From Camelus ferus (lineage: Eukaryota): 64,000 nt of DNA. The stretch lies in contig NC_045712.1 in NCBI RefSeq assembly GCF_009834535.1, forward strand, positions 43,400,001 to 43,464,000, written 5' to 3'. The position numbers were made by a program, and so were the translations under genes. The notes below the pieces were generated by a model, which saw only the letters and a program-made list of their open reading frames with translations, was not told where the DNA came from and made no database searches. Positions 1,980 to 56,499 of the stretch are shown here, in pieces. The number at the start of each line of letters is the position of its first letter. The stretch's first letter is position 1.

Positions 1980-2776
1980 GGGAGATGCTTGATGGGTAGG
2001 GAGTATGCCTTGTTTATCTTGTCTTATTTTCATAAAATGGGAAAAAAGCAGCCGTGACTGGGGAGGTAGGAAAAGAGAACACCATGAACAGGACGATGCC
2101 TGGAGAAGAGATGCTTTGTCAAGGCGGTGAATTTTGGGGAGGCACGGTTATGGGAGTTGGGAATTGGGCATTGATGCATTTGACTCTCCGTGCCTCCAGG
2201 GATAACCTGTTACATTCTGAAAGCTGCTGCATCTGTGATCACAGAGATACCCCGATGCTTGGCAAATAGATATGTCAAAGCAGCAAACGGAGCTGGCAGC
2301 CAGAGGGTGGGGCTGCGAGGGTGGAAACAGTGACAAGAAGACCCTGATGCAGAAGCAGTAGTCACTTTCTTCTCTCGTCCCCAGATAGGCTTTTTTAAAA
2401 TTTTTTTTTCTGGATGTGTATTCTGTTTGCTCTCTAGAGAATAAAGAAGTTGAAGTCACAGCTTGCTGTCATCCTTACAGCTGTAACTGTTGCCTAGTAA
2501 CCAGATTCCCCCTCTCCTTGCTTGTTGCCAAGGAGAGGGGAGAAAGGTAGAGAGGAACGCACTACTGAACCTCTTAAAAGCTATTGTCTTTCCCACTCGA
2601 CACAGGACTCCTTGCTCTGGGAAGTCGGCTGGATTTTCAGGTTCTGTAAGCAGAAGGACATTGGTCCCCTGGCCCGGGGCCGCTGGGGCCGGGAACGGGA
2701 GCAAGTGCACTCGTGAGGACGTCTCCTTACGGCAGGAACCGTGTCAACACCCCCTTCTCGCTCTGGCCCACTCTAG

Positions 2777-2947
2777 GACAGACGGAAGATGTGCAGATGC
2801 TCCTGCACTTTGGGGCAGACCCCACCCTGCTGGATCGACAGTCCCGGTCCCCTGTGGATGTCCTGAAGAGGAACAAGAACTTCAAAGCCATCGAGAAAAT
2901 CAACAGTCACTTGGAAAAGCTGGCTGCGTGTTCTAAGGACCTCTCAG
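2777..2947 (+). CDS. TRANK1: TRANK1 exon (171 nt, phase 1-1), ankyrin repeat QTEDVQMLLHFGADPTLLD...KDLS
   Basis: ctctag|GACAG acceptor, TCAG|gtacag donor; inside ORF 2713..2967. Confidence 0.95.
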
Positions 2948-5900
2948 GTACAGCTTCCAGGGAATGAACTTTTTCGAGGGGGCAAAACTGGTTCTGTGAC
3001 ATTAGATGCAAATCAGTTTATCTTTTCTTAGTACATGAAGACAGAAGTGAGACCCCCCCCCCCCAATCTTCGGAAGAGTTGTTTACTTTTCTTGAAAGCT
3101 AGAATGAGACAACTCTTATTGAGAGAGTGTCTGCCACGTTGTAGGAACTTGGCCAGGTCCACCTTTGGGCAGTAGGGGTGAATTTTTTTTTTTCCATGAA
3201 TGCACACGTTAAAAAAGAAAAAAAAAAATCAGACAGAGCAGGGGATAACAAAAATTAAGCCCACTCCTCAGAACCAGCCACAGCCCCCAATTTAAAAAAT
3301 GTATCTCTATTTTCCAGTCTGTCAGCTGGGGACAGCATCTATTGACTGACTGCTGTATAAGATCAAGTGCAACAAGTCAGCCCTAGTTGTTGAATTTTGT
3401 CAAGTTCTTTGTGTCATTTACATTCTGTTCCTTAACTCTCAGTTTTCTGTGCTTCATCTATAGATTGGTTCTAAACATTGAAAACCAGTAAATGGCATTC
3501 ACAAGGTGGAGTGATGATGTAAATGTTACACTTTCTAGAACTAGTGGCCTTGCTGGACCCATAAAAGAGAATCACCAGATGCTCTTAAAATTTTGCCCTT
3601 TAAGTGTGATACACTTTAAGCATCCTAGATCAATGAAACAGACATATGCCTTATTATATATGTGTGTTTGTGTATGTATGTACACATGCGTCCTTCTTAG
3701 AATCTCTTTAGACTTTTACTTAGACTGTGGCCACAGCACATGCATATTATGCTTCTTTTAGTTCTTGTGACTCCTGTGGCTCAGGCCTGTCTAGATTTAT
3801 CTCTTGCTCTGCTAAATACCTACTTAAGTAAGTTTTTCACGGAGGAGATACGCCTAGTAGACTTAAGGAGTTTTTGAAAATGTCTTTACTTTATCCTTTG
3901 ATTGATGGAGACTGGTCTGCATACAGACATTGTGTTTCTTCCATCCTAAGTTGCACTTTCCCCCCACCTTTGCCTTCTCTGACATTGGGATGTGCATCAC
4001 GATCAGGGACGTGTCACCAGTTAATGGCAGGTGGCTTTTTCTGGTGTGTCTGACAAGCCATGGTCTCAGAGGTTTACGAAATGCACTGTAAAACCTTGTT
4101 CCTCAGAACTCTGTGTTCCAGCTTCCCCTTGTTACTGATGAGAAGTCTGATGCCAGTCTCCCATATCTTCCCTTCTGATTTTCTGTCCTTACAGTTCTGA
4201 AATTTCCCAGAGATGTGTCTAGGTGTGGGTTCTCATTCATTCTTCTCGCTTGGCACCCGTTGGCCCCTTTCAATCTAACTTTTTATAGCTCAGGGAAAGT
4301 ATCTTCTATCATTTTGTTCCCTTCCAGCATCTCTTTGAGCTTCCTGAATGTATAACATGTCTGTCTGCATTCCGTAATGTTTTCTGTTTCCCTTTTTCTT
4401 TCCAGATCTATGACTTGGTCTTTAGCTTTTCCTTTTATAATTCTGCTTGCCTGTTGCTTTTTTTTTTTTTTTAATTTGGAAACTCAGCTTTAATTTTTAA
4501 GAACTCTTTCTGGTTCTCTGCTTGTTTCTTATCTGTGACAGCTTGTATGTGATTGACATTTGCCTTTTTTTTTAATTTTATTTTTTATTGAAGGGTAGTT
4601 GATTTACAATGTTACTTTCAGGTGTACAGCAAACCAATTCAGTTACACATACACACACATATATTTTCAGGTTCTTTTGCTAGCTACTTCTTGAATGGCA
4701 TTTAACAATATTGAGAATTTTTTTTTAAGGCCATCCTCCTCTTTTCTCTGAATTATTTATGTTTTTAGGGGGTTAGTGGACCTGTCTTCTTGCTTCTCCT
4801 TTGTGCACTTGCCTTTCCTATATTATCTTCTGATCTTTGGATGGTTTGTATTTATGAATGAAGGACAAGACTTATTAATACTTGATAGATGGTTAGTGCA
4901 CGTTTATTGAAGTTACTTGGATGTGTTTCCCCAGAAACACTCCCTCCCTGGAATGGGTGAGTAGGCGGCAAGTTGAAGGCAGTATGTGGGGTGTGTGTGT
5001 TTGGGGGAGAGTGGGAGGGACTCTTCCAGGCTGAGGATCTTGGCAATTTCCAGGGTCAGGAAAGCTTTATGTGGGGAAGATTGAAGCTGCTTTTTATCAC
5101 TGCCCCTCCCCCACTGCCTTCCCCATCTATGTTTTAATTCTTATTTATTTATTTAAAATATGTCCTTGTTTCTAGGAAAATGTGGGAATAAGGGGAGAGA
5201 AATGTATCTGCAGAGTCCTGTTTTTCCGGGATGTTCTTTTAAAACTGTGATATATCATGTTTTGTTTTCAAATGACCTCTATTTTAAAGAATTGTAATTT
5301 CTTTGGTGAGGTAGTATATTTAATAAGTCATTTTGAAATGCCTCCTGAGAGCTTATGCCTGTAATCTGTTTCAGGAGGGTTTCTACTGTTTGAGAAATTG
5401 AAAGTAACCAGATTTCTCTGCCAATGAATTTCCAGGTTTTAAAATAACCTTGTAAGGAAGGACCACCAGTTAATGGTAGAAAATGGCTGGTTTGCTTGCA
5501 AATTTATCGTTCATTAATTACAACCTTAATTCTTAGAATGCTGTAGATGTATAGATGTATGTTATATTTAGTGTTATGGACTTTAGTATAAATCATGAAC
5601 TTCTGGTTTCGTTTTTAAAGTTTTGATTTTTTTCATTTTCCTTGTATAATGAATCTTTGAATGTCTGCTGATCCTAAAAACGTCTTATCTTCTGAGATGG
5701 TCTTGCTCTCCCTTCACCTGTCTCCTCCTTCACCAACTAGATCTGTGGTCCAGGTTTGGCACCAAGAGAAGAGACTCAGTAGGATCACAGCTAGCCCCCT
5801 TTCCAATCATTAGAATTCAGCTGTCAGACGCACCTGGCAGATAAACACATGCGGGAGGAGGGAACGTGCCTGGTTCCAGGCTTGACGTGTGGGTCGCTGG

Positions 5901-8900
5901 GGAGTTTGTGTTGCAGTGAATGCAGACAAGCCTAAATCCCCCAGTGCTCATTGGTGAACTTACTGGATGTCTGATAACTTTAAAGCTTTCCAGACCATTG
6001 ACCACGAAGCTTTGCTTGCCACGCTAGAGGGATACTGAATGACTCTAGGGACACACCAAGTCAAAGAAAGCAAAAGAAAATGATAAAAAATCAGAAAGGA
6101 AGAGGATGACAGTTATCAGGCAGGGTAACAAGTTGGAGTCTTCCCAGAGAGCTCTTCCCGAAGACTAGCGGTAGAACCCTTGTAGAAGCCAGTATTGGAA
6201 TATGATCTCTGTATCAAATGTGGCTGTTCGTTTGAGCATCACATGGCTGTTTAGAGTCGTATGCATACATTTTGTTTCTAAGATCTTGCTGGTTGCGCAA
6301 ACTTTAAAACCTGAGGTGGAGCTGAGGGATCTTTGTAGACCTGTACCATGCAGTATAATTTTCTATACTGATGGAGATGTCCTATAACTGCTCTGTCTGA
6401 TGTGCTAGCCGTGAGGCACATAGGGCCACTGAGCACTTGAAATGTGTGTGGCTTGTGCAACTGAGGAACTGAAATTTTAATTTGCTTTAGTTAACTTTAA
6501 TTTTACATTAAGTTAGCGGCCACTGTGTAGGACAGCATCTTTTTAGACTTTAGCCCTAGCACGGGTTTCTGTCCAGAGTAGTAGTTGAGAGGATAGTGGG
6601 AGGGAGATGCAAAGAGAAGGCCTGGGGCCATGGGAATAAATGTGGATCTCCAGTCATAAAAACGAAGATTGCATGGACCTTAATCTCTCCCCATCCTCAC
6701 ACATTACCGGGCCCATTGGAAGCATTATCTTTGAGAAGAGCTCCTGCTATGGGATTGGTACCCTAGTTCTGACCCAAGTCCAACCTGATGGGTTCTGATT
6801 TTCACATCTGTGGTCCTGAGTAAAGCACCAGTAGGACACTAGCTTTTGTACCCCGATGAACAAGCGCTCCAGTTTATAGACTAGGATAAGAGATGCTCTC
6901 ACCTTTCGCTCCTTGGGAGGTTTACTGTGCCCCATTTTGATGAAAATGGAGATGGTGTCTTTCAGTGGCTTTTGCATCTAGGTGAGAAAAAACTTGAGAA
7001 ACAAAGAGTCTCACTGAAAGGTTCTGCTGTTCTCCACACCAGAGCTTCTCGATGTTAATATGCACATGAAGCATTTGGGAGCCTGTTAAAATGCAGAGTT
7101 TGCTCTCGCAGGTTCAGGGCAGGACCTGAGATACTGCCTTTCTCACTAGCTGCCTTGGAAGCTGTAGCCCAGCGGGGGATCCTGAGTGGTCAGGGTTACC
7201 TGGCTGTCTTCCCTGCTTCTCCCGGCCACCACTAGATGGCAGCACGTCCACCTTCTCTGGCAGCTGGTGCCCCAAAGTCCTCAGGATCAAGAACAAAATT
7301 GCAGCCTTTGTTTTTCTCACAGTTGTTTGTGATCTTCGGGGTCTGCTGCTGGGAGACCTGTCTGATGATGGGATGCTTTTATTCCCCCTCATTTTCATAG
7401 TCCATCTCCTTTAAAGTGCTCCCGTCCTGTTAGAACATGGCATGGAACACACATTCACCTCTTCACAATGTGATAGCACGTATGCCGTGGGCCAGGCCTG
7501 TCTCACTGGGTATGAAAACACATGTCCAGTTATCTGTGCAGTAAAATTCCATTTTAACCAGGAGGGCTTTTTGAGTGTATCATCTGATACCAAATAAAAC
7601 ATTTACCCTTTTTCCAGCCTTCCTTCAGTGGGTGATTTTGAATCATGACTCCTTTCTCAGTAAACTGAAGCAAGGGGATAGTGTCTGCCCATTTTTGCCC
7701 AGAGAGCTGGCTCCTTAACTCTTGGCTTTTTCCACTTGTCAGTAAGGTGCGTGGGCAGCTGCCACGTGGCTGGATGTTGCTGCTGCGCTAAGCCATCCTC
7801 CTGCTGTCATGTCCCTGAACCATTATATCAGTTACCTACGGCTGTGTAACAAACGACCCCCAAACTTAGTAGCTTGAAGGAGCAAACACTTAGTTAGCTC
7901 AGGATCCAGCAGTTGAGACTGGGCTATTCTCACAGCCTTAATGGAACTCCTTCAGGTGTCTGCCTCTTGCTGATCTTAGCTAGGCTCTTTCACATCCAAG
8001 GGGCCTCAGTTTGGATGACTGGGCTGATGTTTCTTATCTAGCCTAGACCTGAACAGAACTCATAAACAAGGCCTCTCAAATCCTAGGCTCAGAATTGACA
8101 CAAAAATCACATCCACAGTCTTCTCCCAGTCACGGCAAGTCTTGAAGCCAGGCCAGAACCGGAGGTTAGGGTGCCGGAGGAGGCTGGGGCGGGGTCCTCT
8201 AGTGGCTGGCACTTCGAAGTCACATGGATACGGAGAGGGATGGAGAGGTGTGGTCATCTCTGCCATTTACTGCTGCCATGATCTCTGCAGTCAGAAGCAG
8301 CACCTGGGGGTGTTTTGCAGGTCTGAGCAACGGTGAGGGACCCGCTAGCGAAAGCGACATTTTCCGGAAGGCCTCCGAGCAGCTGGTGACCTACATGAAC
8401 TCAGGAAGCCGGTTGCAGAAAAACTTTCTGAAGCAAGAAGTGGTTCAGAGGTTCTTACGCCTTCTTTCTTCACTGCAAGGTAACTTTCCTCACAGCCTTC
8501 AGTCATGCCCAAGGATGATTTAGGCTCCTTAAAACCCTTCTCTCATATCTTTTAAAAAAAATTATTTGTTTATTTAATTATTTATTTTAAAAAATAGCAT
8601 CACTTTATTTTATTTTAATTTTATTTTATTGGTGGAAGGGGGGAGGTAAGTAGATTTATTTTATGTTTTGATAGAGGTACTGGGGATCGAACCCAGGACC
8701 CTTGTGCATGCTAGGCACACACCCCGCCACTGAGCTATCCCCTCCCCCCTCTAAAACACTGATTTTGAAATAATGTCATGATCTACATGTAAAACATTCA
8801 ATCAACACAGAACGTTCTTCAGTGAAAAATCTGTCATCTACCCCTGAACTTCAGTCCCCACATCTCATCCCCAGAGGCCAACTCTGTTACTTGTTTTTCA

Positions 8901-11900
8901 TGCATCCTCCTGGAACTGTTATTTGCATATATCATCCTTTTTCAAAAAATGCCACAGATGTTTCTTTCTTCTGTTGACTAAGGCTCTACTTCCTTAAGGT
9001 ATTTCCAGCCTTCCCAAGGAGCTCACAGGGCCGGTGCTGGCCCTGAGGTTCACGTGTGGTTGAGTAGCATGCCCGAAGTAACTAAGTACTTGTTTATGGT
9101 TCCCCAGGACCTGAAAATACTGACCAGTAACTTGGGGTATTTCTGTACCGATGTGTTGGGTTGTTGTTGGGAGCAGAAACCACATAAACCATCTTTGGAG
9201 TGTGATGTATTCTTGTTTTTGAAAGAAATTCCTCCTGACCTGGTCTATGACATTAACCGCGACTGTGCCAACACCTTCATCAAGTCTTTACTGGAAAAAC
9301 AGAGATGGCCCGAGGTGCTTCTGCTGCTGACCCGCAAAGCGAGCGGGGAGCTGCCGCTCGGGGACTGCCTCATCAAAGACTGCGACCTCTCGGACCTCGA
9401 CCTCTGTGTGGTCTTCCCCCACCTCTGCACCTGGGACCAGCGGAGGACCCAGCTCCTGGGCCACCTGATAGACCGCGGAGGTGAGTCCTTGAAGCTGAGT
9501 GAGCATCCGGGGGTCATCCCAGGGGAGTCCAGGCCATCACAGGACTTCCTCTTGATTTCCCTTTCTCCTTTAAATTCTGCCTCTTCTCTTCCTCCCTCAT
9601 ATCTTCTCATTTTGAAGCAGTGATGGGGTCAGTGCATTTTTGTGAATTCTCCCCTTGCTCTCTTGTGTAAGGAACCTCAGGCCTGTGGGAGGGGCCTTGG
9701 CCCCGGTTGTAGCCACAGTGGTCATTTCCTCCTGACCTCCAGCTGGACTTTTCCCTGCACTCAGTGTGCCATGTGGGTGCTTGTCAAACTGTGTGGCCTT
9801 CTTTTCTGATCCACGGGTTGGGATTTGAGATGTTTGTTTTTAAAGAAACGGCCAGATAAATGGGTGGGTGGAAACATCTGCCGCTTTAATCAGCACAGTC
9901 ACACTTGGCTGGATGTGTGTCTGGAGTGTGCACACATCTTGCTGGACTGGGTTTTATTTTAAAACTAATTTGGAAACACCAACCTCCTCCCACCCCCTCT
10001 CCCCAGCGCCCCCCAGTAAGGCCACTACTAACTGTGTGATCTTGGGCACGCTACTTATGCCTCTGTCTCCTCATTTATAAAATGGGGGTGAAAATAGTCC
10101 CCCTTAGGTCTGTTTTGAATATTCAATGAGCTCAGAGATGCAGGCTCTTGGAAGAGTGCCTTGGCTGTGTGCTTTTCTGCCTGCCTTGCCGTTTAAGGGG
10201 AAATGACCTTCAGAAGGAGTGATGACACCTTGGTCCCAACCCTCAAAGTGCCATACAAAGCCCATGGGTTTCAGGACGTAGATGGTATGCCTCCATGTTA
10301 TTTCTGCTTTAATTCTTCAATCCATTCCTTGTGTGGAGCATTGCTACCTTTGCCCATAAATGAAGGCGCTTATGGCATTCCTGTTTTGTTCCCGATGAAG
10401 CAGGCACTTATCGAGTACCTCCCTGGGGTCAGGTGCTAGGACCCAAGGATGGAGAGTGAATACATGGCTGCGGGTGGCATTGTGTGCAGGAGGGTACAGG
10501 GCTGCAGGGGATGGAGGTCAGGGAGCCTGCACTGCAGAGGGGAGGCGTGGACTGAGCTAAAAGGAAGGTGGTGTGGGGGTGGAGGAGTGTCAGGGAAGAT
10601 GACAAATGAGGGCAGAAGGGCATTTTCAGGAAGGAGCTTCCTAGAAGCAAAGGATGTGTGAAACACGCCTACGTCTTGATCACTGTGTGTTGGGGACGGT
10701 GCTGGGAAAACCCTGGGAGTTCAGTTGTTTGTGCCAGTCCCTACTCCAGGGCAGTGCTGATGGCGGTCCTGTGGCGGGATGGGAGGGGGAGCTGGAGAGA
10801 TGGGAGAGGAGGCGAGGCCCATGGACAGGGCACTTGGAGGAGCTGGGCTTTCCCTCTGAGGGTGCATGGGAAGCCCTTGCCTCCCAGAAAGGATGCTGGC
10901 GGGAGGGCTTGGAAGTAGGGTCAGCATCAGCTCTTGCTTTGGAATAAAGAGCAGAAGCGGTCCCAGCCCCGCAGGGGTGCAGGGCTGTGCCTCCGCTCAG
11001 GGATGCAGCTGACTGTGCCCTTCTCTCTGCCTCTGCCAGCCTCGCCTGAGGGTCTCCAGGGCAGCCAGGAGAGGCCGATCACCACGTGCCTGAAGCATGA
11101 GGACTTCGAACTGGCCTTCCTCCTCTTGACCAAGGGTGCAGATCCTCGAGGCATTTCTCTCACCGAAGGCGACACTCCTTTGCATGCTGCACTCCACATC
11201 TTTCTAGAGATCAAAGGTAGGCCTTTATTTTGTAAGCAGTCTTTTTCTTGAGGAGGAAACTGGATATCAGAACTGATGCGATGCTCTTTGGTCTTTCCTA
11301 CTGGGAAAACCAACTGTCTGGAAAAGGCTTGTTTCTTGGCCAGGTGCGTATCTCCTGGCCCCTCACACGTAGCTTGATGGGAAGGAGTGAGCATCACAGT
11401 GAATGGTCAGGGTGGGTTCACTGAGAAGGATTCTTAAGTTTCGAAGTCCATAGCTGCAAATATTTTCCATTTACTTACACCATTTTCAAGGGACTTGACA
11501 TAAAGGATCTTACTGGAATATTATAAGGTGATTTCAGGGTTTCTCAGCCTTGGCACTGTTGACAGTTGGGAGGGATAATTCTTTGTGTGTGTGTGGTGGG
11601 TGACCTGTGCATTGTAGGATATTTAGCAATCTCTGGCCTCCACCCACTATATGCCAGTAGTACCTCCTAAATTGTGACCCTCAAAAATGTCCCTAGACAT
11701 GGCCACATGTCTGTTGGGGACCAAATCGCCCCCAGTTGAGAATCACTGGGTTATCAAATCCTTGGGGAAGTTCCGTGTTCTCGGGACCCCTGGCTGGCAT
11801 CTCTCTCAAATCCACGGGGTCTGTGCTCCCCAGAAGAGCTGTTGAGCACTCATCAGGGTTTTTGTGTCTTTCAGCTGACGTCGGTTTTAACTTCCTCAAT

Positions 11901-13614
11901 CACCTGTTGAATCTGTTCTGGTCCAAGCCCAGCGAATTTCACTACCTCAACCCCAACAACCAGGACAGCAGCGGGAACACGCTGATGCACATCCTCTTCC
12001 AGAAGGGCATGCTGAAGCGCATGGGGAAGCTGATAGGTCTGCTGGTGAAGTTTGACATCAACTTCAACCTGAAGAACAAGGAAGGCAAGGACGTGCGGCA
12101 CCGCGTTAAGAAGAACGACGCGCTGCTCCTGGCCTGGAACAAAGCCCTGCTGGAGAGCAAGCGCAGGGGCCGCCAGGACACCGCCGCCCACGCGGGGAAG
12201 CCCCTGCGCTCCGCGGCCCCAGCTCACGCGTCCCAGATCAAGGGCTCCTCCAAGTTGCCACCCTGCGGCGGCGGTGCCCGAGCCCCGCCCGGAGGAGCCG
12301 TGGTCCCTGACAGCTGGGAGACCCTCCCAGATGCCCAGGCGATGAGGCCGGAGCCTGGGGTGTCCAGGCCCAGCTCACGGAGAGACTGCCTCGTGCAGGA
12401 CATCACGGCTTTGATTCGGCAGGTAGGAAATGGATCCATCCCTCTCAGAGGCCTGTCCCCAGGCTCCTGAGCCTCTGGAGGCGGGAGCTGGCCCTGAAGT
12501 GGAGAAGGAGCCTCAGGGCGCCCCGGGGGCGGGGGCCTCTGACAGCAGCGGGAACAACCCCGGTGACCTTGAGGCCGCGGAGGGATGCGTCCATGGGGGC
12601 CTCGGGGCCCGGCAGCCCGTGCCTGCTGGTCACAGGGGGACAGAGGGCAGTGACGACCAGGACGACCAGAGCCTGCCAGAGGTCGAGGCCTGCCTCCTGG
12701 ACTTCGAGAACATGACATGGGAGATCGAGTGCACTTCGGAGATGCTGAAGAAGCTATCCAGCAAGATCATGACCAAGGTCATGAAGAAGAAAATCATCCT
12801 CGCCATCCAGAATCTGGGCAATGGCGAGTGGACGCGGGGCCTGCGGAAGCGGCTGAGGAACCTGAAAGGGAGCATCCAGCTCTTCGAGGCTAAGCTGGAC
12901 AAAGGGGCCCGGATGCTGTGGGAGCTCGCCATCGACTTCTCCCCTCGGTGCAGCGAGAACCCCGAGAAGATCATCGCCGCAGAGCGCGGCGCGCACCCCT
13001 CGGAGAAGGTGGGGCGGGTCTACACGGAAATCATCCGGATCTGGGACGTCGTGTTGGATCACGACAGGCTGCCGGACTCCATCCAGGCCATCTGCAGCGC
13101 CTACAACCGGGGCCTGTCCTGTGTCCTGCGCAAGAAGCTAAAGGGTATCAACAAGGGCCAGGTGTCGGCCAACAAGAAGATCCAGAAGTGGATTCCCCGC
13201 TGCTACGTGGAGGACACGGAGGCCGAACAGAGCGGGGCGCGCGCGGAGCCCGAGTACTTCCCGCCGGCCAGCGCCGTGGAGACGGAGTATAACATCATGA
13301 AGTTCCACAGCTTCAGCACCAGCATGGCCTCCAACATCCTCAACGACACGACGGCCACCGTGGAGTACCCCTTCCGCGTGGGCGAGCTCGAGTACGCCGT
13401 GATCGACCTCAACCCCCGGCCGCTGGAGCCCATCATCCTGATCGGGCGGAGCGGCACCGGCAAGACCACTTGCTGCCTGTACCGGCTGTGGAAGAAATTC
13501 CACGTTTACTGGGAGAAGGCGGGGCAGGCGGGGAGCCCGCTCCTGGCCAGACAGATCTGGCTGAAGAGAAGGTTGGAAGTAGAGCCCCGAAAGGAGGGTC
13601 CAGGCGGGGGAGAA

Positions 13615-13647
<33 letters not shown>

Positions 13648-16600
13648 GAGGAGGAAGGTTCCCTGGAGGTGGAAACACTGGACAGCGGAGAAGAGGAGCA
13701 GGAGACTGAAGCCTGTGCCCGCGGGGCCAGCGAGGAGCCTGGGGGCCCATGGGCAAGGGGCGGAGGGATGCACCCCAGAACAGCCCCACCAGCTGGAGCA
13801 TTTACATCAGATCTTCGTGACCAAGAACCACGTCCTGTGCCAGGAGGTGCAGAGGAATTTCGTGGAGCTTTCCAAGTCTACCAAGGCCACCAGCCACTAC
13901 AAACCCTTGGAACCCAATGTCCACAGACTCCAGGACCTGAAGGATGAGAACTTTCCACTGTTTGTCACCTCCAAGCAGCTGCTCCTCTTGCTTGATGCTT
14001 CTCTGCCCAAGCCATTTTTCCTGAGAAATGAAGATGGCAGCTTGAAGAGAACCATCATAGGATGGTCCACGCAGGAAGAGCTGACCATCCCCAACTGGCA
14101 GGAGGAGGAGGAGGAGGCCGAGGCAGAGGAGGGCTACGGCGAAGAGGAGAAGGCTGCAGAAACGCGGCCGTGTGACAGCGACCCCCGGGTGTTTGTGACA
14201 TATGAGGTGTTCGCCAATGAAATATGGCCAAAAATGATTCAAAGGGAAAACCTCCTACAACCCCGCACTGATTTGGAAGGAAATAAAATCTTTTCTGAAG
14301 GGATCTTTTGAGGCTCTCAGCTCCCCCAAAGGGAGACTGACAGAAGAAGCATATAAGAAATTAGGGCGGAAGCGGTCCCCCAATTTCAAGGAAGACCGGA
14401 GCGAGATCTACGTCCTCTTCTGCCTGTATCAGCAGATCAGGTCTCAGAAAGGTTACTTTGATGAAGAGGATGTCCTCTACAACCTGTCCCGGAGACTGTC
14501 GAAGGTCAAGGTGCTCCCGTGGTCCATCCACGAGCTCTATGGTGATGAGATCCAGGACTTCACCCAAGCCGAGCTGGCGCTGCTGATGAAATGCATCAAT
14601 GACCCCAACGCCATGTTCCTCACCGGGGACACGGCCCAGACCATCATGAAGGGCGTGGCCTTCCGCTTCAGCGACCTGCGCTCCCTGTTCCACTACGCCA
14701 GCAAGAGCACCGGTGACAAGCAGTGTGCCGTGCGGAAGCCTAAGAAGATCCACCAGCTGTACCAGAACTACAGGTCCCACTCGGGTATGTCGGTGCCTTG
14801 GGCTTGCCTGTGAGGGAGGTGCTTGGGCACTGACCTTGGGCTGCTTTTGAAGCTGTGGTCCAGCTTTTGTCAGGCCCTTGACCCAGCTGGAATAAGGACA
14901 CTGTTTTGGAGTTTGTTAGTGGTTACCCTCATGAAAAAGAGATCTTTTGATTTCTGCCAGTACTTACTCTTAGGCTGATCATTTAGGCTGTGGTTAAATG
15001 GAAGTGGACCTTTAAGTTATTACATCTTAAGGTGTTGGCCATGGTATGAAAACATCTCAGGGGAACGTTTAAACTGCTTGAGAACTTTTGTTACAGCACT
15101 TTGGAACTACGTGCTTATGCAAGATAAAGTAATTCACCAATTACAAATCATTAATCCTGAAAGCAGCTTTTCTCCCAAGGAGAAGCAAGAAAAGGCAGGT
15201 GGGAGGTGGTGGGAGATGACACACACTCAGGCGCTTTTGATTTGCATCTCACTTGTGCCTCTCCTCTGTGCCAAGCACGATGCTGAGCACATATAGTACC
15301 TGCTTTTAATCCTCACAACAATCCTACAAAGTAGGCGTCATTCCCATTTTATGAAGACACAGAGGGTTGAAATAGTGGGACACTAATGCCAGAATATTTC
15401 CTTTATCATTTATAGAATGCTCACTGTGTTCTTATGCTGCTATCGTACTATCTTACTGTATTATCAGACTTCTCCAGTGACTCTTTGTGCTTTTGATTGG
15501 AATTTCATTCAATTTCTCAGTCTTTGGGAAGAATTCACATCTTTACATTATAGGGATTTCTGAACCTCGGCATATTTCTCTATTTAGATTTTTTTTTTTT
15601 ACTGCCTTTTGTGATACTTTATAATTTTCCCCAGACATTTTCCCCAGCAGTTAGATTTGTCCTGGGGACCTTATACTTTTTGTTATAATCATAGCTATAC
15701 CTTTTTTCTCTTTTTATATTTTCCAGTCACGTCTTACTGGTAGAGAGGAAAGCTGCTGGTTCTTGTATGTTGATCTGGTGTCTCACAATCTTGCTGAACA
15801 CTCCTCCTACTTCTGCCTCTTAGAGGTTGGCATGTTGGTGCAGATAAGGGCAGTTTTCATCTTCTTTCCTATACTTGTCATTTCTTTTTCCTGTCATATT
15901 CCTGTGTTATTCCTGAAGTTAATGGGAATATTTCTAACATTTCAGTATTTATGCCTGATGTAGGTTTTTGTTGTTGTTGTTTTGGGGGGTGTGGGTAATT
16001 AGGTTTATTTAGTTATTAATTTTTAATGGAGGTAACTGGGGATTGAACCCAGGACCTCGTGTATGCGAAGCAAGCACTCTACCACTGAGCTATACCCTCC
16101 CCCTGGTGTCTCTTTTTCTAGATACATTTGGTAGGCTATAGTCTGATGGTGAGAGAAAACACACACATCCCAAACACACATATACGCATACACATACACA
16201 CTCGCCCACGTACATACATCCAGTGTAAAATTAGATTAAAATTCTGATTTGTGTAGCCAAGGATTCAGAAAAACGGTCAGAGAAGCCAGGTGGCCTCCCA
16301 GAGTGCAGCATGTACCACACAGCTCAGCCCGGTTTCCAGGGCTCTCAAAGTCTCCTGATGTTGCTTGTCCATCACAGGGTCTGGTTGCATCTGAGCAACT
16401 CAGCTTCGTGGCCTTCTGTGGTCTTCCACTTGTGTTGTGTGGGAAGAACTGGCCCAAGGAACTTGATGCTCTTAATAGGAATTTTTAGTCGCCGCCCTTC
16501 TTTCATCCGTTCAGGAAGCATTTATAGAACTCCTATCCCCCAACACTGTTGGAGGGGTCGGGTGACCAAAACCCACATTTCTCTGTCCTCAGGACATGGC

Positions 16601-19600
16601 TCTGGAAGGCACCCCCTTTTTCGTTGTTGGATCCTGTGGAGAGGACCTAGCACGAGCAGTTGAATGAGCCCCTTATTCTGATGTGTACCCCTGGTTCAGC
16701 ACCACTGGTATAGGGACAGCAGCCTTTATGATCAGCAAAGTAGAGAATGGCGAAGGGAATTGTTCCTGCAAACTGAATTTTTTTTTTAAATTGCTGTGCT
16801 AAGCAACCCACACAGATGATTACTGCGTAAACCCCATCTCCCACCTCCTCTCTTAGTTGTTGTTTTTGGTGGCTGGGAGGTAATTAGGTTTATTTATTTA
16901 TTTTTAGAGGAGGTACTGGGCATTGAACCCAGGACTTCATGCATGCTAAGCATGCACTCTGCCACTTAAGCTATGCCCTCCCTCCACCTCTTCTCTTAGG
17001 ATGGAGGGAAGGCTGTGTGATTTCTGTGTATAGAACCAGAAAAAGCCCCAATAAGATGTGCTAGAAAACACATAAAATGTTAAAAAAAAAAATTCAAGCT
17101 CCCTGTAAGGCTGCTAACAACTAACATTTTGTTTTATTTCCTCCTGATCTTTTTACTTATACATATATGCATTTATCACACTCATGTATGTATTTATTGA
17201 TTATGTAGTGAATATATGTTTAGTGAATATTTCCCCATTTTTTATTCTTTAAATTGAGATTCACACAGCATAACATTCATCTGTCTAAAATGTGCAACTT
17301 GGTGGGGTTTTTTAAATAATATATTCATGAGGTTGTGCAATCATAACCACTATCTAACTCCAGAACAGTTTTGTCACCCCAAAAAGAAACCCTAAAACCA
17401 TTAGCAGTCTCTCCTCATTCCCCTAACCCTGTGAACTACCAGTCTACTTTCTAGATTTGCCTATTCTGGACATTTCTGATAAATGGAATCATGCAACATG
17501 TGACCTTTTATACCCATCTTCTTTCATTTCACATCATGTTTCCAAGATTCTTCCGTATTATAGCCTATGTTAGTACTTCAAGTTTTTTGTGGCTGAATCA
17601 TCCTTTATTCTTTGAGTATGTTTATATAAAATAATTTATGTAGTTCCCTAGAAGGTCCTTTAAGTGGATTCCAGTTTTTCACCACAGTGAACACTTATGT
17701 GCCTTTTTCTGATTCTTTCATTAATGTAAATCTCTGAACCACAATATCAGCTGAGTTAGATTAGATTCAACAGTTTCAACTTGTGCTTTCAATTTCTTTA
17801 AACTGTGTACTTTTGATAATAGTAGCCCTGGATGATGAAATTTCCCTTTACTCCTTGATAACTGCAATGGGGACACATGTGCCCATTTCATAGTATTCTA
17901 TCTGGTGTCGAGCAAACGGCACAGGGCCCCTGAGAATAGTGGGAGACCCAGGATGGTCTGTGTTCAGACCAGCTTCAAATCCTGACACTTGGAGGTGTTT
18001 CCTAACTTCTCGGACCTCAGCGTCTCTGTTTGCAAAAGTGGGGTTGTCTGGTCTGTCTCATCGGGCTGTTGGGAGGATTAAAAAGGGATGATTTTTAGGA
18101 AGGTGCCTGTTGTACAGTCAGCATCACTGTCGATGTTACTTCAGTGCTTAGACAAAAATGGGACCCAGGGAGAAAGCTCAATGGAAAGTTCTTTATCCAG
18201 TGTGACAGTTTTTCTTAGTATAGTCCTGTCTCGGCTGGGAATACACCTGGCAGAAAGGGTGATGTCCCAGCTAACATCCAGCACTGCTCTTACCAGGTAA
18301 CGTCTCTGGTGCGCTAAATACCAATGACAGGGGATGGAATAACTTGCTTTTTTACCGTCTACATTAGCCGCCTGTATTGGCATTCTAACAGCTCTAATTG
18401 TTTAGATTACATTTCCGCCTTGACTCTTCTTCATGAGGTAATTTTCTCTAACACGAATATAGGTCAGGAATGAGATTGTACAAAACCTTCGTGCTACAGC
18501 AAACATGCCTCTGTCTTCATCTACTGCACCCAGAATAGTACAGCTCGGCGCCAAAGGGATCATCTAATAGGATCTGGAAATGGGCTTGCAGCTAGCTGTA
18601 TGTACCATCAGGACCAATGCTGCCTCTCAGGAAAAACAAAACAAAACCAAACCCAAAATAAGAAAACAAAATACAAGAAACCCAGCCATGCTGTCATGTT
18701 GTATGTTACATGTTTTTTGTTTTATCCCAGGAATCCTCAATCTGGCATCTGGAGTGATAGATTTACTTAAGTTCTATTTCCCGGAATCTTTTGATCGCCT
18801 TACAAGGGATTCTGGCCTCTTCGATGGTCCCAAACCAATTGTCCTGGAGTCTTGTAGTGTGAGTGACTTGGCAATATTGCTTCGAGGCAACAAAAGGAAA
18901 ACCCAGCCCATCGAATTTGGAGCCCATCAGGTGAGTTTCTTGAGATTGTATGTTTTTAAATAAAAGGCGAAGTGGGGAGGGTACAGCTCAAGTGGTAGAG
19001 TGCATGCTTAGCGGGCACAAGGTCCTGGGTTCAGTTTCCCAGTACCTTCTTTAAAAATAAATAAACCTAGTTACCTCCCCACCTCCACTAAAATAAAATA
19101 AATAATTTTTTTAAATAAAATAAAATAAAAGGCAGTTTGTGATTGAAAAAAGTTTTGAGAAGCTGAGTCATTCCACCAGGTAGAACTCAATAGCCCCTGT
19201 TCCAAAATGAGGAAGTTTCCGGGATGGGTGAGTGACTAATTGTTATTCACAGTCCCACCAGCCTGGCTGACCAAGTCCACACCGGTACTTCTCTTCAAAG
19301 ACATTCTCTGCCTCCCATAGAAATCGACTCAGTGTTACTAGATTTCTCTTTCTACAATTTGATGTTTTTTCTCTTCTATTCCCTCGCTTTTTTTTCCCCC
19401 CTCAGGTGATCCTTGTAGCCAATGAAATGGCAAAGGAGAAAATTCCAGAAGAGCTGGGGTTAGCACTTGTGCTAACAGTTTATGAAGCAAAGGGCTTAGA
19501 ATTTGACGATGTCCTCCTTTACAACTTTTTCACTGATTCCGAGGTATGTCATTCTGAGTTCTTTTCCCACAGTGCATGTATCTGTATGAGCTACCCTTCC

Positions 19601-21608
19601 ACTCCTGGGAAGAGAATTTGGAGCTGAGTCGAAAAGAGTTTGTCACAGGTGCCTGTTTCTGTTTTGGACCATTGTCCATTTGGTGTGGGGCTCTTTGTGT
19701 GTTTGGATGTGGGTTTTGACAAGGGCTGTGGGTTGCTCCGCAGTGTCTCATGACCTGGTTCTTCCCATGCCCTGCCCTTCCCTGCTCTCTTGTATTCATC
19801 TCTTCTCAAGGCCTGGTACCCAAGTGCCAGCTTCCGGTTTTCCCTACGACTGTTATTCTTGACTCCCGAGGATGCTCGAGTTGGAGCAAGCTCTAATGAG
19901 AGCCTTACAAATGAAGGCAAGGTTAGCAGTGTCCACCTGGCGAGGACAAAACTGGGCAAGGTCATCCCTAGAGAGAGTGAACTCCGGGAAGACAAATGAG
20001 CCTTGGTTCCTGCCCCCGGGATCAGGTAACGCAGGAGACCAGAACAGCCGCCCCGCCTGAGCTTCCTTCCGGCATGGCTTCGCCACCACTGCTTGCAGGC
20101 AATGGCAGCCGGAGAGTCCCTGGACTGACAACTCAGTGACCTCTGTGCCAGCCTGTTGTCTCAACTTGGCTCCTGAGTGCTGGTGACAGTCTTTCTCCTC
20201 CAGCTCAGTACATTACGGGGAGAGCCACCAACTCAAGGCCATTGTCCTCAGTCTCCTAGCCACTGGTGTCTCTTCACCACCGTCTTTGATGGGGCTCAGG
20301 CTGGCTGCTGACTGTGGGGTGGGGTCTTCTTTGGGGACCTAGTTGGCTGTGCCCGGGTCCTCGTTGCAGATGTCCCACTGCACATGGCGCGTGCTCGAAG
20401 GGGCTATTTTCATACCCAAGTCAGGAGCACTCTTAGCTTTGACTCCCTAAAAATCTGCCCCAGAACTAACCCTTTGAATGGAGTCCATATTTTTCTTTTG
20501 TCTAGTCTTTTAAAAAATGTCACGTTTGCCTTGATAATACCTACAACTAATATTGCTACGGGCACTTTACAGTTTATAACGTGCTTTTTTAATACATTGT
20601 CTCAGTTCATCCTCCACTGACCCTCTGAGGTTGTATTTTTATTACCCCCATTCTACAGATAAGGCCAGGGGTCATGGACATTAAGTAAATTGCCCATAGT
20701 CATAATGTAGGTGCCAGAGCCTGGAGATGAAGTCAGATGCTCTGAGTTCTAAATCTCATGATCTTTCCCCTAAAATTCCTTCCTTTTAAAGCCCTGCATG
20801 CAAATCGGCTGCCAGAACCTTCCACAATGAATATATCATGGCCATCCCTTAAGTGCATTCCTTTTCTATTGGCTTTTGCTAATAAAATGAGATACATTCT
20901 CATTAATCCTGGAACCATTTTTAATCTCTGAGGACTAACTTTTTTTTCTCATAATACATCCATTGGTCATGGTTGGACCGAGGCTCTCCTAAAAGAGGAA
21001 GGGGTAAGACTTTGTTGTTCCTGTCTTTTATGAAGTGCCAGTTGTATGCTTGTGCTCGTTAGAAGCTCCAGGAGCTCTGGGCTGATACATTGGTAACTTG
21101 TGGTCAACTCTGTGTGTGAAAGAAAAATCTGGTTATTCTCTCTAACCTTGACCCTAGCACGGCAGAGTCCTGGATGCCTTGACCCTAAGCTCCCACCAAT
21201 GGCTCAGTGAGTTGCATGAAATTAAAACAATGACCAATTGGATCTTTTGTAACATCCCCTTCATCCTATGTTTATAATCTCGATATGATGCTTCCCAGTT
21301 GCCATGGGAGTAGAGTCATGCATTCCCCAGCGCAAAGCACACATTCAGTTTATCATTTACAACCCCAAGACCAAAAGGCATCAGTGCAAATGGAAGTAGA
21401 TGCTTTAGTCCAAGGAGAGGAGAGACAGAGGTCACTGAAGTCCCCAGTTGTCCTGGTCTGGCTGCTCACATGGGGTTTCTTTCAAGGTGAAGGCTGCTGA
21501 ACAGTTTGCTATTTGAGGCAGATGGACTGAGGCAAGCACCTCTCTCCATCCCTGGACTCGTCTTCCACCCATGTGTCTAGCAGGCTCACTCTGTGTGTGT
21601 GTGTGTGT

Positions 21609-21640
<32 letters not shown>

Positions 21641-24600
21641 AGGGGCTTCTTGTTGCCCTGACCTGTGAGTCTTCTCTTCAAAGGATCCATAACATCGTGA
21701 TCTATCCCCTAATTAGTCAGTAGGAGAACCGTTCCTATTGAGGAGATGGTGTTTAAAGCACTTAACCTAGTGTTTATATAGTTTAAGTTACAGAATAACT
21801 GAAGGGAGGTGAAGAACTCTACCTACCCCGCCTTTCCATCATCCTTGAAAGGCTACAGAGGTAGAGAATAGCATCATTTTATAAACAGAAAAGAACAGAC
21901 TAGGAGAGCTGACCACCTACTCCCTCCGACACACTAAAGTATGAAATCTGAAATTTCATGGGAATCCTTGACTCTAAACACTGCACGTCCTCTGGGCACT
22001 TTTGCCTCCTTAGGGTCTGCAAACTTAAGTCCTGGCAGCCAGATCCAGCCTGCTGTCTATTATTTTTGTGTGGCCTGTGAGCTCAGAATGGTTTTTACAT
22101 TTTTAAATGGTTAAAAAAGAATCAAAAGGAAAATAATATTCTGTGGCATGTGAAAATTACATTCCATTCAGTTTTAGCATCAAGAAATAACGTTCTATGA
22201 GGTCCCTGCACGCCCATTCATTTACTACGGACTGTGGCTGCTTTTGCTCTACAAGGGTGGAGTGGAGTAGTTACAAGGGAGACCCTACCCACAAAGCAAA
22301 AAGGAGTCATTATCTGACCCTTGACCAAGAAAATTTGCAGACTCTGGTCTACAAGTCACAGTGGTTCTGTGGCTTGATTTGGATAAAGGGAAAAATGGCT
22401 AAAATATGAAGTCTTTCTCAAGCATGGTGTGGACACTTCACATTGATTATCTCCTTTCATTTCCCAACAAACCTGGGTCATTCTATCATCCCGGTTTTAC
22501 AGAAAAAAATGAGACCTAGAAGAAGCAAATAAATATTTGGTCAAAGTCACATAGCTCATAAGTAGGTGAACTGTGCCATGCTGTGTTCTCTCTGAGCCCA
22601 GAGTCCATCTTGCATAGTGTACCCCAAGGCTCCCGAATTTCTCCATCCTTGGTTGAATCATTTAGTTTGGACAGTTTGTCCCATGTGTCTTAATGACTGA
22701 GCCTTAAACATGTTGTGAGAAGAGGTGAGGACGCTGGTTTCCTCTCTCCATCTGCTTGTGGAAATGCTTGCAGCGAGCACTTTGGGCCCTGAGCCTTCCC
22801 CCTGGAAGTGAGCACGTGTGCCTGCTTCGCGGCTGTCTTGGCCCAGCGTCTGGGGCTGTCTCCCCGGTAGCTGCCCTGATCCCTGCCTGGGCCCCGACCC
22901 CCACTCTGAGGCCACAGGACGCCCCCTCCTCATGGCTGGGGCTGAAGGCCTGGCCCCCATGTCAGGAAAAGGGGGCTCAATTCTCCGCAAGGCCTGGGGA
23001 GGCTGGGTGTAAGCTTCAGAAGTGTATTCTGCTGGTCTTTAATGTGTCTTTGTTATTCAGGCTTACAAGGAATGGAAGATCATTTCCTCATTTACTCCTT
23101 CATCCTCCGAGTCCAGAGAGGAAAGCGGGCCACTGATTGAAGTGCCCCTGGAGAAACGCAGCTCCTCCCCGGGGCGCCATCTCACCATCAATCCAGAAAT
23201 GTACAAGGTGATTATCTGCCACTGGTCCTCACACTTACTTGACAGGGAGCCAGTAACCGAGACTTGGACAAGAAAATGAGGTTAGAGATGGAGCCTGTGC
23301 TGTGGGTCTTCCTGCTCATCAGCACTGGAGGGTGGAGGACAAGCAAGGGAACACGGGCATCTTAGCGTTGGGGACCCCTCTCCTCAGCAGAGAGCCGGGC
23401 TCGATTGATAGAGGTGCCCATGGGTAGGCTGCACCTCTGTTCACCTCTGGAACTTGGCTCTGTTCAGAAACTGTGACTGTTGTCTCCCAGCCTTGATTGT
23501 GCAGGGACCCGGCTCCCGGTCCCCTTGGCATCCCAGCTGCATCCTCAAGAAGGAGGCCAAAGCTATGAAGTTCTGTGGAGCTCTTGCCTAAGGGAGGCAA
23601 ATGGGGGCCTTGAGTGATCGCAACATCACAGAAAATCAAACCAGCAAAATCAAAACCTTTGGGAGAAGCTACTGTCCTAGTTTTATGTCTTATACAGAGT
23701 ACAAAACAAACAGAATAGCAGTTATCAGGTTATTTCTGTCAGTGCCAGGAAGGCTCTGCAGAAATAGATGTCAAATCACCGCCAAGCTATGCAAACCTCT
23801 GGATAGCCACAAATCCGTCATTGTTTTGAAATGTGCATTATTTCATCAAGGAGGCCCTCCCTGAGTTCAGGTCATCATCCCCTGAGACCGTCAGGCCTCC
23901 ATCGTCCAGTAGGTCAGGAGTAATTTAGTGCTGATGATAGTCACAACAGAGGAGACTGCTCCAGTTTTACAAAAGAAGTTACAGTGACTGAGTGGGATGT
24001 AACCATGGGGGTAAACGGAGTGAAAAGTTCATGGGACCTGTCTGCACTATCTTCCTATGAATCTATAATTATTTCAAAAGAGACAAGCACAGCAGACCCC
24101 ACGGTGGGTCTGGACTCAGGGCGCCCCTCTCTTGCTAGAGCTCCCTTTACCTGGGCTGCGGCCACAGTGAGCTCTCTGGTCCCGCTCATGCCTGTGCTGT
24201 CCTCCGTGAAATGTTGCACTTCTCCAAAATCCGAGTAAGCCTTTGAAGTGAGTCACACCGCACTCTAGACAGAGGGCTCACATCTTTGTCCTGTTCTCCT
24301 CTTTAGCTCCTGAACGGGGAGCTGAAGCAGCTGTACACGGCCATCACCCGGGCTCGGGTCAACCTCTGGATCTTTGACGAAAACCCAGAGAAGCGGGCTC
24401 CTGCTTTCAAATACTTCATGCGAAGGGATTTCGTCAAAGTTGTGAAAACGGATGAAAATAAAGGTCAGAGGTCATGAAAATATTCTGGTTGTCAGATAGA
24501 AAGCATGTTACTCTCAGCCACTCCAGGATCAGGTATAAAAGGGATAGTTTTTTGAAAGCACTATTCTGTCCACATTCTTCTGAGAAATGAGAATTTGTAT

Positions 24601-27600
24601 TTATCACTAAGGTGTGTGGGAGGCAGAGGTGGAAATGGGATTGGGAGGGTTAACTCCTTCAGGGAAGGTCTTTTATCTGTCCTTTGGAGGTGAGCATCCT
24701 GGACAAGGTTAGAGAGAATAGGCTCTGTTGTGGGGAGGCAAAATGGTGTGGGCTCTTGGACAGCTGATAGGTAATACCTATCCGGATAAAAAATGTACGT
24801 GCCTTTTGACCCAGTAATTCCACTTCTAGGAATCTATCCAGAGATACTAGAGTATTATCAAGGATACTATCCAGAGTATTTCAAGGACGTGTCTCAAGGA
24901 GACGTGCATGAGAGGGTTCACAGCCCTGTTTGTAATTATGAGAAACTAAAAACGGCCTAAGTGTTCATCAAGGTGCAGCTGTTTGCAGGGACTCCTCTGG
25001 TGCCGGGATGGGCGGGTGTGGGGTTGCTGATGAGATGTGGGCACTTTTTACCCTCCTGTGCTGTTTGCCGAGTTTCAAAAAAAAACACCCAACATCATCA
25101 TGAATTGTTTTCATAATTTGCAAAGGCTAGCTAATTAAAAAATGGAATGACGTTCTCCTGATAGCATAACTAGGGGAGAAATAATCAGCTCTCATGAGGA
25201 GATAACTGTTCTCTTTCTCGTGGGTTGGCAGTTGAGTTGGCTCCTCCAGGCCACGGTGAATTTCTCCAAGGATGAGGGGAAAGCTCAGGGCTCCGCGGCT
25301 GCAAAGAGGTTTGCTGGTTTCCTGAGCGTTTTCCAGCCAGTTTTAAGGAGGCTATTTCTGGTTACAGCCAATGGCGCGGCCAGGGACCAAGATCAGATGT
25401 TCTGTTCCTGGGACCTGACTGTATGGGCATAATGGGAAAAGTCAAAGTCTTGTGTTAACCGGGCTTCTCGTTAGAACTCTCCACCTGTGCAGCCACAGGG
25501 CATCATTCAGGGCCCACTTTCTTTCCCTGGGCCTCCTCTTCCTCGTTTAAGAGGAGAACGAGGGGGTGGCCTCCCAAGCTTGTTCTCATTCTTTCCTGCT
25601 GCTCAAACCTGTTTTATTCTTGAACTAGGTTCTGGCATTCGTTATAAAAGGTCATCAAGCTAAGCAGTTTTTGTTTTTTTTAATTAAAAAGTCACAATGG
25701 AAAAAAAAACAAATTTCTTCTGTATAGCACAGGGAACTATTCAATATCTTCATATTGAATATGACGAGAATCTTCAATATCTTGTAATAACCTTTAATGA
25801 AAAAGAATATGAAAACATTTATGTATATATATATGCATGACTGGAACACTGTACTGTTCAACCCCAGTACCTCCATTGAAATAAATAAGTAAATCTAATT
25901 ATCTCCCCCACAAAAAACAGCAACAACAAAAAGACACAAGAAAAAGTACAGTGGTAATTGTGAGTCATGAGTTGCACAGGGTAAAGTCTTTGAGGACATC
26001 TGTTTCCATGGGGAACTTGGGGTGCGTGGAGTGACTATGTCATTGAGGGTTTCTTCCATGTGGCACCAGCAGAGGTCACTGACCTGAGGCAGAGATACTT
26101 CGGGGCTTTGCTGTGGGAATAACGTGTCACCAGGGCACTCAGTGCACATGGTGTCAGGACAAGATGCTGCGAAGTCAGTTTTGCACACAGAGGTGGTGGA
26201 CAGCCAGCAGGGAGGGTCAGGCTGCAAGGATTCGTGTGTGTTTTTGCACCTTCTAAACAAAGCTGGCGTGTCCGCCTGGCTCCTCCAGTTGGCAACCCTT
26301 GGCCTGGGTGTCTCTGATTCGGCATCTGTGTTGTCTCGATACTCAGTCTTTCAGGTGTTTCATGAAGCTGTGACTCAGAATCTGCAGGGAGTGTCACCAC
26401 TGCTGATGACACTTAGAGGGTCTCAGGAGAGCGGGCCAGTACAGTCACCACGGGTTGGTGAGAATAGCAGACGGACCAGCAGCAGGTGATTGTCATGGTC
26501 TGTGTCCACCAACCAGAATGTGTCAGATGGCTTCCTGCAAGGAGGACAAAGTCTGCACATTTGGAAATACTGTAAAATTTTATCACCTTGTCCCTTGCTA
26601 AGGCCCTGGCATGGGAGTTTGTCAAGAGCTACATGGCTTTGGGTTTTCAAGGAAGAATTAGAACTTGGTCTGTCTTCTAACTCATAGCCATACAAAAGTA
26701 GACCAAAGCTCAAATACCAAATGGCATCCTTTCTCACACCCACCTCCTCCTTCCAAAATGCACCAGAACCTGGCTGGATAAGCTCTCCTCTATCTTACAT
26801 GAATACTAGACAGACAACATGGATGTGTTCTCGGGCTGCCAAACAAAGACTGGGTGGCTTACATAACAGAAGTTACTGTCTCACAATTTTGGAGGCTGGA
26901 AGTCCAAGATCAAGGTGCTGGTGGTTTGGTTTCTTCTCACGCCTATCTCCCTGGCTGTAATGATGTGTATGTGTTAATCTCCTCTTCTTATAAGGACGCC
27001 AGTCTGATTGGATTAGGGTCCACGCAACTGCCATGTTTTAACTTGATAATCTCTTTAAAGACCCTGTCTCCAAACACAGTTGAGTTCGGAGGGACTTGGG
27101 GGTTAGGGTTCAAAACTTGAGAAATTTTGTTGAGGCAAGGGTAAATTCAGCCCATAGCAACAGGTTTAAGTGAAGGATGCTCAGAGAGGCAAACCCACGT
27201 TTCTTTTTCATTTTAGACCTTGATGATAGCATGTTTGTTAAGACCTCAACCCCTGCAGAATGGATCGCACAAGGAGATTACTACGCTAAACACCAGTGCT
27301 GGAAGGTAAGGGGTGAGGTCTGCCTGCCCTGTGGCCTCGTCAGGCCTCCCAGATAGGGTTCTCATCACGGCATGTGTCACCAGGATGGGACAGGGGTCAC
27401 AGTGTTTGTGCTGCTGCTGCTTCTGAAACATCCGGGCCTGTCCCTCTGTCTCCTAGGAAGCTGTCATCATCCTGCATTTTAAAACAGTAACAGATTGGTC
27501 TGCCCTTTGTTTCTCAAACTGATCAGGCATGGACCTCACTGCCAATCTGAGTCTGGCGGGCACAGGTTAAGCTTTGTCTCCGGAACTGAGCTCACCGATT

Positions 27601-56250: not shown

Positions 56251-56499
56251 GAGAATATGGGATTGTGACTGCAGACATGGAGTGGGGGAGGTCTGCAAGT
56301 ACAAGGATTAGGCGTGTGGTGTGCTTGGGAAGTGTGTAACAATGCAAAGGGCATGGAGCAGCGTTTAGGTATCACCAGGAAGACACGAGGCTGGAGGGAC
56401 GTTTGTCTTTGAGGTCATAGGTGTGGACAGAGTGTGAGCAGGTCTCTGAATCTGGGCTGAGGGGGACAGCAAATAGGATACAGGGCATCTGCGAGACCC

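Follow-up and report, generated by a model that had tools for sequence, protein, structure and literature searches.

The window analysed here (the whole stretch of 64,000 nucleotides from Camelus ferus, RefSeq assembly GCF_009834535.1, contig NC_045712.1, positions 43,400,001 to 43,464,000 of the forward strand) carries a TRANK1 orthologue on its + strand, because a tblastn search with TRANK1 of the turtle Carettochelys (P0001, 2,971 residues), the closest named homologue, gave 18 collinear coding pieces covering residues 272-2903 over the ankyrin, helicase and C-terminal regions. Directly upstream of the helicase lies a conserved domain, the subject of this report, whose predicted fold is almost certainly that of the RelE/ParE (BECR) toxin superfamily. 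In the following list, residue numbers (W3, R67, H117 etc.) count from the codon at 12712, fractions of 107 refer to an alignment of 107 domain segments (A1), and strands and helices were assigned by DSSP on a predicted model with per-residue confidence (pLDDT, predicted local distance difference test).

2764..38416, + strand: TRANK1 orthologue, with ankyrin repeats, RelE-like domain, helicase and C-terminal region.
12712..13119, + strand: predicted RelE/ParE-fold (BECR) domain of TRANK1, made up of 12712-13065 and a conserved C-terminal helix.
12721..12732, + strand: strand beta1 (EIEC), following the near-invariant pair W3-E4 (W in 106/107, E in 98/107).
12736..12819, + strand: lysine-rich helices alpha1 and alpha2 (12736-12759 and 12775-12819).
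12880..12894, + strand: strand beta2 (LFEAK), with E59 in 95/107 and Lys or Arg at K61 (12892-12894) in 93/107.
12910..12939, + strand: strand beta3 (RMLWELAIDF), whose first residue is R67 (12910-12912), the candidate catalytic Arg, in 99/107.
12937..12954, + strand: motif F-S-P-R-x-S at the exit of beta3, with S77 in 107/107, F76 in 98/107, Arg or Lys at R79 in 96/107 and Ser or Thr at S81 in 101/107.
12955..13020, + strand: variable beta3-beta4 loop (the insert), pLDDT 55-75, with many alignment gaps, short or nearly absent in some homologues.
13021..13053, + strand: strand beta4 (YTEIIRIWDVV), with R109 (13036-13038) in 101/107, W111 in 105/107 and Ser or Thr at position 105 in 81/107.
13060..13119, + strand: helix alpha3, pLDDT 92-97, starting at H117 (13060-13062), the candidate catalytic His of a D-H-D motif, in 96/107.
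13444..13470, + strand: Walker A motif (GRSGTGKTT) of a UvrD-like superfamily 1 (SF1) helicase, 126 codons past 12712-13065.
14544..14639, + strand: helicase motif II (DEIQD, 14544-14558) and motif III (TGDTAQ, 14622-14639); 87.6% identity to turtle TRANK1 over 14238-14789.

The domain is enclosed in an open frame of 506 codons (12427-13944, + strand), which extends to Walker A and matches P0001 residues 708-1156 with 57% identity over 453 residues (tblastn). A sequence-only reading of the window had proposed a RelE/ParE toxin-like domain at 12712-13065, directly upstream of the UvrD helicase, with an Arg and a His at active-site positions. The 118-residue translation quoted there was found to be identical to ours, the two residues are encoded where they had been placed, and the segment precedes Walker A in frame. 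The conserved C-terminal helix at 13060-13119 is part of the domain and extends beyond the segment.

Walker A, motif II and motif III are all intact, as in UvrD-like SF1 helicases, and TRANK1 orthologues match the Pfam families UvrD-helicase (PF00580) and UvrD_C (PF13361). Pfam analysis of full-length TRANK1 yielded Ank and UvrD domains only, in line with the limited annotation given in the sequence-only reading; the RelE-like domain is unannotated in Pfam, because nothing is reported across that region. The helicase also contains 15 consecutive glutamates (13612-13656), part of a low-complexity stretch rich in Gly and Glu that is located between Walker A and motif II.

The distribution of the domain was analyzed by phmmer, using 157 residues (12670-13140) as query against 1.84 billion cluster representatives. 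Homologues were found in 248 proteins at E<=1e-3 and in 110 at E<=1e-10; a further search with the A1 profile returned two fragments only. All named homologues are TRANK1 or TRANK1-like proteins, from turtle, amphioxus, crinoid, annelid, nemertean, Nematostella, the sponge Oscarella and many molluscs. The near-invariant columns of A1 are W3, E4, G38, R67, W70, F76, S77 (107/107), I108, R109 and W111. Conservation of the Arg and the His among homologues, which had been named as a check, was confirmed for both (99 and 96 of the 107 segments, respectively). The region 12712-13119 is a conserved TRANK1 domain, far beyond chance, from sponge and cnidarian to vertebrates.

In ENA assemblies, numerous unnamed homologues are encoded by one large open reading frame (ORF) each, of about 1,080 residues. 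A bacterial origin was considered for them and rejected: they lie on gene-poor contigs with RVT_1 and DUF6589, which look eukaryotic. Two such loci, L004:8001-15305 and L006:8001-19022, both from ENA "metagenome" assemblies, hold TRANK1-like ORFs of about 1,080 residues beside RVT_1 and DUF6589 (transposon-type) genes; in L004 the TRANK1-like ORF is followed by a second ORF of 1,084 residues. Molluscs carry numerous TRANK1-like paralogues. Together, the ENA ORFs and the mollusc paralogues suggest a lineage-specific expansion of TRANK1-like genes in invertebrates.

The structure of the domain was predicted with AlphaFold2, without templates and with A1 as alignment. The model of the window sequence had a pLDDT of 86.9 and a predicted template modelling score (pTM) of 0.81, and DSSP assigned strands at residues 18-21, 71-75, 81-90 and 118-128 and helices at 23-30, 36-50 and 131-150 (model numbering). 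The resulting order, beta1-alpha1-alpha2-beta2-beta3, a low-confidence loop, then beta4-alpha3, is the element order of the RelE/ParE (BECR) fold. A second template-free model, of residues 76-202 of P0061 (a plankton protein from a TARA Oceans scaffold, 39% identical and with a short loop), showed the same topology with a pLDDT of 93.1. Both models agree with the secondary structure that had been read from the sequence, beta-alpha-alpha-beta-beta-insert-beta. Of the insert of about 30 residues that had been proposed, only a variable loop of about 19 residues was retained, whereas its supposed start, F-S-P-R-x-S, and its supposed end, Y104-x-E106 within the last strand, are conserved. In the homologues P0061 and P0098 this loop is reduced to about 5-10 residues.

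Both models were compared with solved structures by Foldseek. The first 12 matches of the window model in the Protein Data Bank (PDB) were YafQ, YoeB, RelK and HP0892/HP0894, with template modelling (TM) scores by target of 0.57-0.77 and probabilities of about 1, at E-values of merely 0.02-0.3. The top 17 PDB matches of the P0061 model were all YafQ, YoeB, RelK or HP089x. The same toxin families were matched in AFDB Swiss-Prot, and ESM Atlas agreed.

An independent search of 48,161 PDB representatives was performed with VIA-align. The list was led by 25 entries of the RelE/ParE superfamily, including HigB of S. pneumoniae (score 10.6), YoeB (10.4), E. coli RelE (9.8), an archaeal RelE (9.6), ParE2 (9.5), YafQ (9.3), ribosome-bound HigB1 (8.8) and Cami1 (7.3), and the best unrelated fold scored 5.8. 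Superposition of the whole domain on solved members of the superfamily clearly exceeded that on unrelated folds. The solved RelE, YoeB, YafQ, HigB and ParE toxins were the sole strong structural matches, and the structural part of the sequence-only reading was borne out.

The domain is very probably homologous to the RelE/ParE superfamily, rather than similar to it by convergence. Convergence or a modelling artefact would make this small alpha/beta unit a linker domain peculiar to TRANK1 and unrelated by descent to the toxins. In favor of that explanation, the sequence-profile tests (see below) were marginal or not significant, Foldseek E-values over both models were merely 6e-3 to 0.3, and small folds can recur. 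We consider convergence or an artefact highly improbable.

ParE toxins are gyrase poisons, not RNases (ribonucleases), and lack the RelE catalytic set. ParE fitted the predicted fold almost as well as the RNase members, and the fold alone cannot separate RelE-type RNases from ParE. A ParE-like domain would act on a protein target (a topoisomerase or other ATPase, poisoned or regulated) and not on RNA. However, the best and most complete matches were the RNases HigB, YoeB, RelK, RelE and YafQ, and the TRANK1 domain, unlike ParE toxins, keeps conserved Lys/Arg, Arg and His residues at RelE catalytic positions, which is the RelE/YoeB pattern. A ParE-like function is the least probable of the explanations considered.

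A1 was aligned by hhalign with family alignments built for RelE and YoeB, starting from the E. coli RelE, YoeB and YafQ sequences of the MG1655 record. The alignment with the RelE family was collinear from beta1 to beta3 (P 0.0037), with a score reached by 2 of 200 column shuffles; over the RelE comparisons P was about 0.003-0.01. Helix alpha2 aligned with the YoeB sequence "KRIVKKINELIK" and with alpha2 of RelE. R67 paired with RelE R61 and YoeB R65 in the two alignments, which upholds the earlier placement of this Arg; in the RelE alignment K61 corresponded to RelE K54 and E59 to RelE K52. RelE-type RNases likewise have conserved basic residues where K61 and R67 lie, in beta2 and at the beginning of beta3.

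The position of H117 is the beta4-alpha3 junction, near which the YoeB superpositions end (model residues 17-134 on YoeB 1-83/84, with the YoeB C-terminus falling at model residues 133-134); the correspondence is given at the level of ranges only. Toxins of this superfamily carry acid/base residues near the end of beta4 or in alpha3, namely R81 and Y87 in RelE, H83 and Y84 in YoeB and H87 in YafQ; we take RelE R81 to sit at the equivalent beta4-alpha3 junction. Zhang et al. 2012 gave "[KR], R" as the Tox-RelE signature, corresponding to RelE R61 and R81, and pointed out that many BECR RNases conserve a Ser or Thr in their last strand, with which the Ser or Thr at TRANK1 position 105 (81/107) may be compared.

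Taken as a whole, this ancient TRANK1 domain with a RelE/ParE (BECR) fold is best read, with guarded confidence, as a metal-independent endoribonuclease effector. The scissile phosphate would be gripped and polarised by K61 and R67 from the exposed face of the sheet, as by K54 and R61 in RelE; H117, at the beta4-alpha3 junction, would serve as general acid/base, like YoeB H83 and RelE R81; and R109 may perhaps also take part in cleavage. The helicase, to which the domain may be coupled, and the ankyrin/TPR arrays would choose or supply the RNA substrate, or else bind to ribosomes, which would make TRANK1 an interferon-induced RNase coupled to a helicase. Considered separately, we hold the case for an active RNase to be about evenly balanced, and dependence of that activity on the ribosome to be rather unlikely.

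Several observations weigh against this reading. No RelE/ParE family was found in Pfam, NCBIfam, PADLOC or PDB sequences, either with single sequences or with the 107-sequence profile. The alignment with the YoeB family, in the same register as with RelE, was not significant, 29 of 200 shuffles reaching its score, and the toxin profiles used were shallow (at least 68% identity within RelE and at least 82% within YoeB). A conserved Glu, E59, occupies the RelE K52 position, and no equivalent of YoeB Glu46 was identified in the TRANK1 domain. The domain is also buried in a protein of roughly 2,900 residues, which may limit its access to a ribosomal A site, and the TRANK1 gene of this assembly holds five frame breaks.

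As to the sequence tests, a significant profile match to RelE/ParE had been set as a check, and none was obtained by sequence methods in Pfam, NCBIfam or the PDB: no toxin family, PF05016, PF06769, PF15738, PF05973 and others, matched the TRANK1 domain significantly. The A1 profile gave noise against PDB sequences (434 Cro at E 0.23), as did NCBIfam and PADLOC scans of individual A1 members. The Pfam family Gp49, of the same clan, was weakly matched by four of the 107 members (best E 0.016). The YoeB family profile gave no gain over the single YoeB sequence, and after removal of the loop from A1 the hhalign alignment was still not extended through beta4.

These results bear on the main rival, a homologous fold that is catalytically inert. 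The domain would then be an RNA-, ribosome- or protein-binding module, or a regulatory accessory of the helicase, whose basic residues bind and do not cut. Such a module is in agreement with the lack of a detectable sequence match to active families, with E59 in place of RelE K52, and with the invariant FSPRxS, absent from the classical toxins that were compared; in addition, the BECR and HEPN families include inactive binding versions (PMC3710099). However, the Arg, Lys/Arg and His are near-invariant at RelE/YoeB active-site positions from sponge to mammal, a pattern that typifies catalysis more than generic binding. We regard an inert module as possible, if doubtful.

No other feature of the family is as conserved as the F-S-P-R-x-S motif itself, with S77 in 107/107. 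No counterpart was seen in the E. coli RelE, YoeB and YafQ sequences, and the motif may belong to an active site or an interface specific to this family.

The five frame changes, relative to the turtle orthologue, fall within large TRANK1 exons near 12440, 13750, 14240, 35668 and 37699. No in-frame stop was found in the TRANK1 coding pieces by tblastn comparison with turtle TRANK1, and the RelE-like domain is free of frame interruptions. At 14240 one surplus C interrupts the conserved peptide 'PKMI-KGKTSYNPALIW'. Between 12300 and 14900, a fraction of 0.90-0.95 of the sampled words was present in at least 20 DNA and RNA runs; for the 61 bases across 14240, of which merely 3 words were sampled, no run was listed as holder. 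These data weakly suggest that the breaks are assembly indels rather than the mark of a pseudogene. Alternatively, they may reflect a disrupted TRANK1 gene in this assembly. One run of N lies in a TRANK1 intron (32184-32433, 250 bases) and a second one downstream of the gene (46832-47012, 181 bases).

The domain was compared with known systems. RelE, YoeB/RelK, YafQ and HigB are type II toxins; the TRANK1 domain differs from them in having no significant sequence match, no antitoxin and no operon, in its variable beta3-beta4 loop, its invariant FSPRxS and its Glu at the RelE K52 position, and in being embedded in a eukaryotic protein of roughly 2,900 residues, with an activity that is predicted only. 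It is not a type II toxin-antitoxin system: its coding sequence sits within a multi-exon gene of about 2,900 codons, and Pfam showed no antitoxin family either in the ORF or across the full-length orthologue.

The Schlafens (SLFN11/13/14) and HELZ2 are interferon-induced proteins that combine an RNA-cleaving domain with an SF1 helicase; in RNase L, also interferon-induced, such a domain is combined with ankyrin repeats. The logic proposed for TRANK1 is the same, whereas the nuclease folds of these proteins (SLFN core, RNB and KEN/HEPN) are unrelated. The architecture of RNase L has been described (PMC3710099). Prokaryotic immunity offers fusions of RelE-fold effectors with sensors or NTPases, as in Cami1 and the C-terminal domains of Menshen NsnC. 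Cami1, a CARF-RelE accessory of type III CRISPR systems (PDB 8phj/8phb), senses cyclic oligoadenylate through CARF, whereas TRANK1 has a helicase and repeat arrays; Cami1 is bacterial, of about 380 residues, with demonstrated ribosome binding, and TRANK1 is likened to it by predicted fold only.

Fusions of RelE-like domains to helicases in bacteria, invoked by the sequence-only reading, have precedents: a bacterial helicase whose N-terminal domain is RelE-like has been described in a 2026 preprint, and in ESM Atlas one bacterial cluster of 987-residue UvrD-family helicases ("DNA helicase II") matched the model with a TM of 0.52, over no more than 95 residues. Bacterial RelE-like helicases also occur among Tiamat type I-K neighbours. 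These bacterial proteins show the same order as TRANK1, a RelE-like domain followed by an SF1 helicase, in a defence context, but they are prokaryotic and lack ankyrin/TPR arrays. AFDB clusters included fungal and protist UvrD-like proteins, plant proteins and a 138-residue cyanobacterial protein (E 8e-8 to 1e-3). As a lead drawn from predicted structures, the RelE-like and helicase module may be older and more widespread than the Metazoa. Cyanobacterial proteins of about 128-138 residues with the same fold were also seen in the structure searches.

TRANK1 is a large, conserved and interferon-induced gene and a replicated risk gene for bipolar disorder. In crocodile cells given poly(I:C), its expression rose by 4.72 log2 (PMC5702629), it is a member of a human interferon-beta (IFN-beta) module (PMC12231911), and it stands on a list of interferon-stimulated genes (PMC6880163). 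No biochemical function of TRANK1 was found described in the searchable literature. Nor was any link between TRANK1 and RelE, or any analysis of this domain, found there, subscription journals and automatic structure-based domain catalogues being outside that scope; recent surveys of RelE/BECR families made no mention of TRANK1 or of helicase fusions.

For a gene of unknown function, the combination of a predicted RelE fold, conserved active-site-like residues and an intact helicase provides a hypothesis testable by mutation, namely that TRANK1 cleaves RNA, perhaps on ribosomes. In its most extended form, which we consider unlikely, TRANK1 would be the first animal RelE-type mRNA interferase, interferon-induced and helicase-driven, cleaving ribosome-engaged or viral RNA, with a RelE-helicase core inherited from defence fusions of prokaryotes and retained in animals from sponges to mammals. 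This would give a molecular function to a leading risk gene for bipolar disorder. A RelE-fold domain in TRANK1 would also bring the RelE/ParE toxin superfamily into the core of animal innate immunity, as another immune module shared by prokaryotes and animals. An inert domain would still be an unannotated, metazoan-wide domain missing from Pfam.

Downstream of TRANK1, about 18 kb past its last exon, the block 56000-58000 is rich in GC (0.61) and contains long + strand open frames, resembling either a CpG island or an adjacent gene's 5' end.
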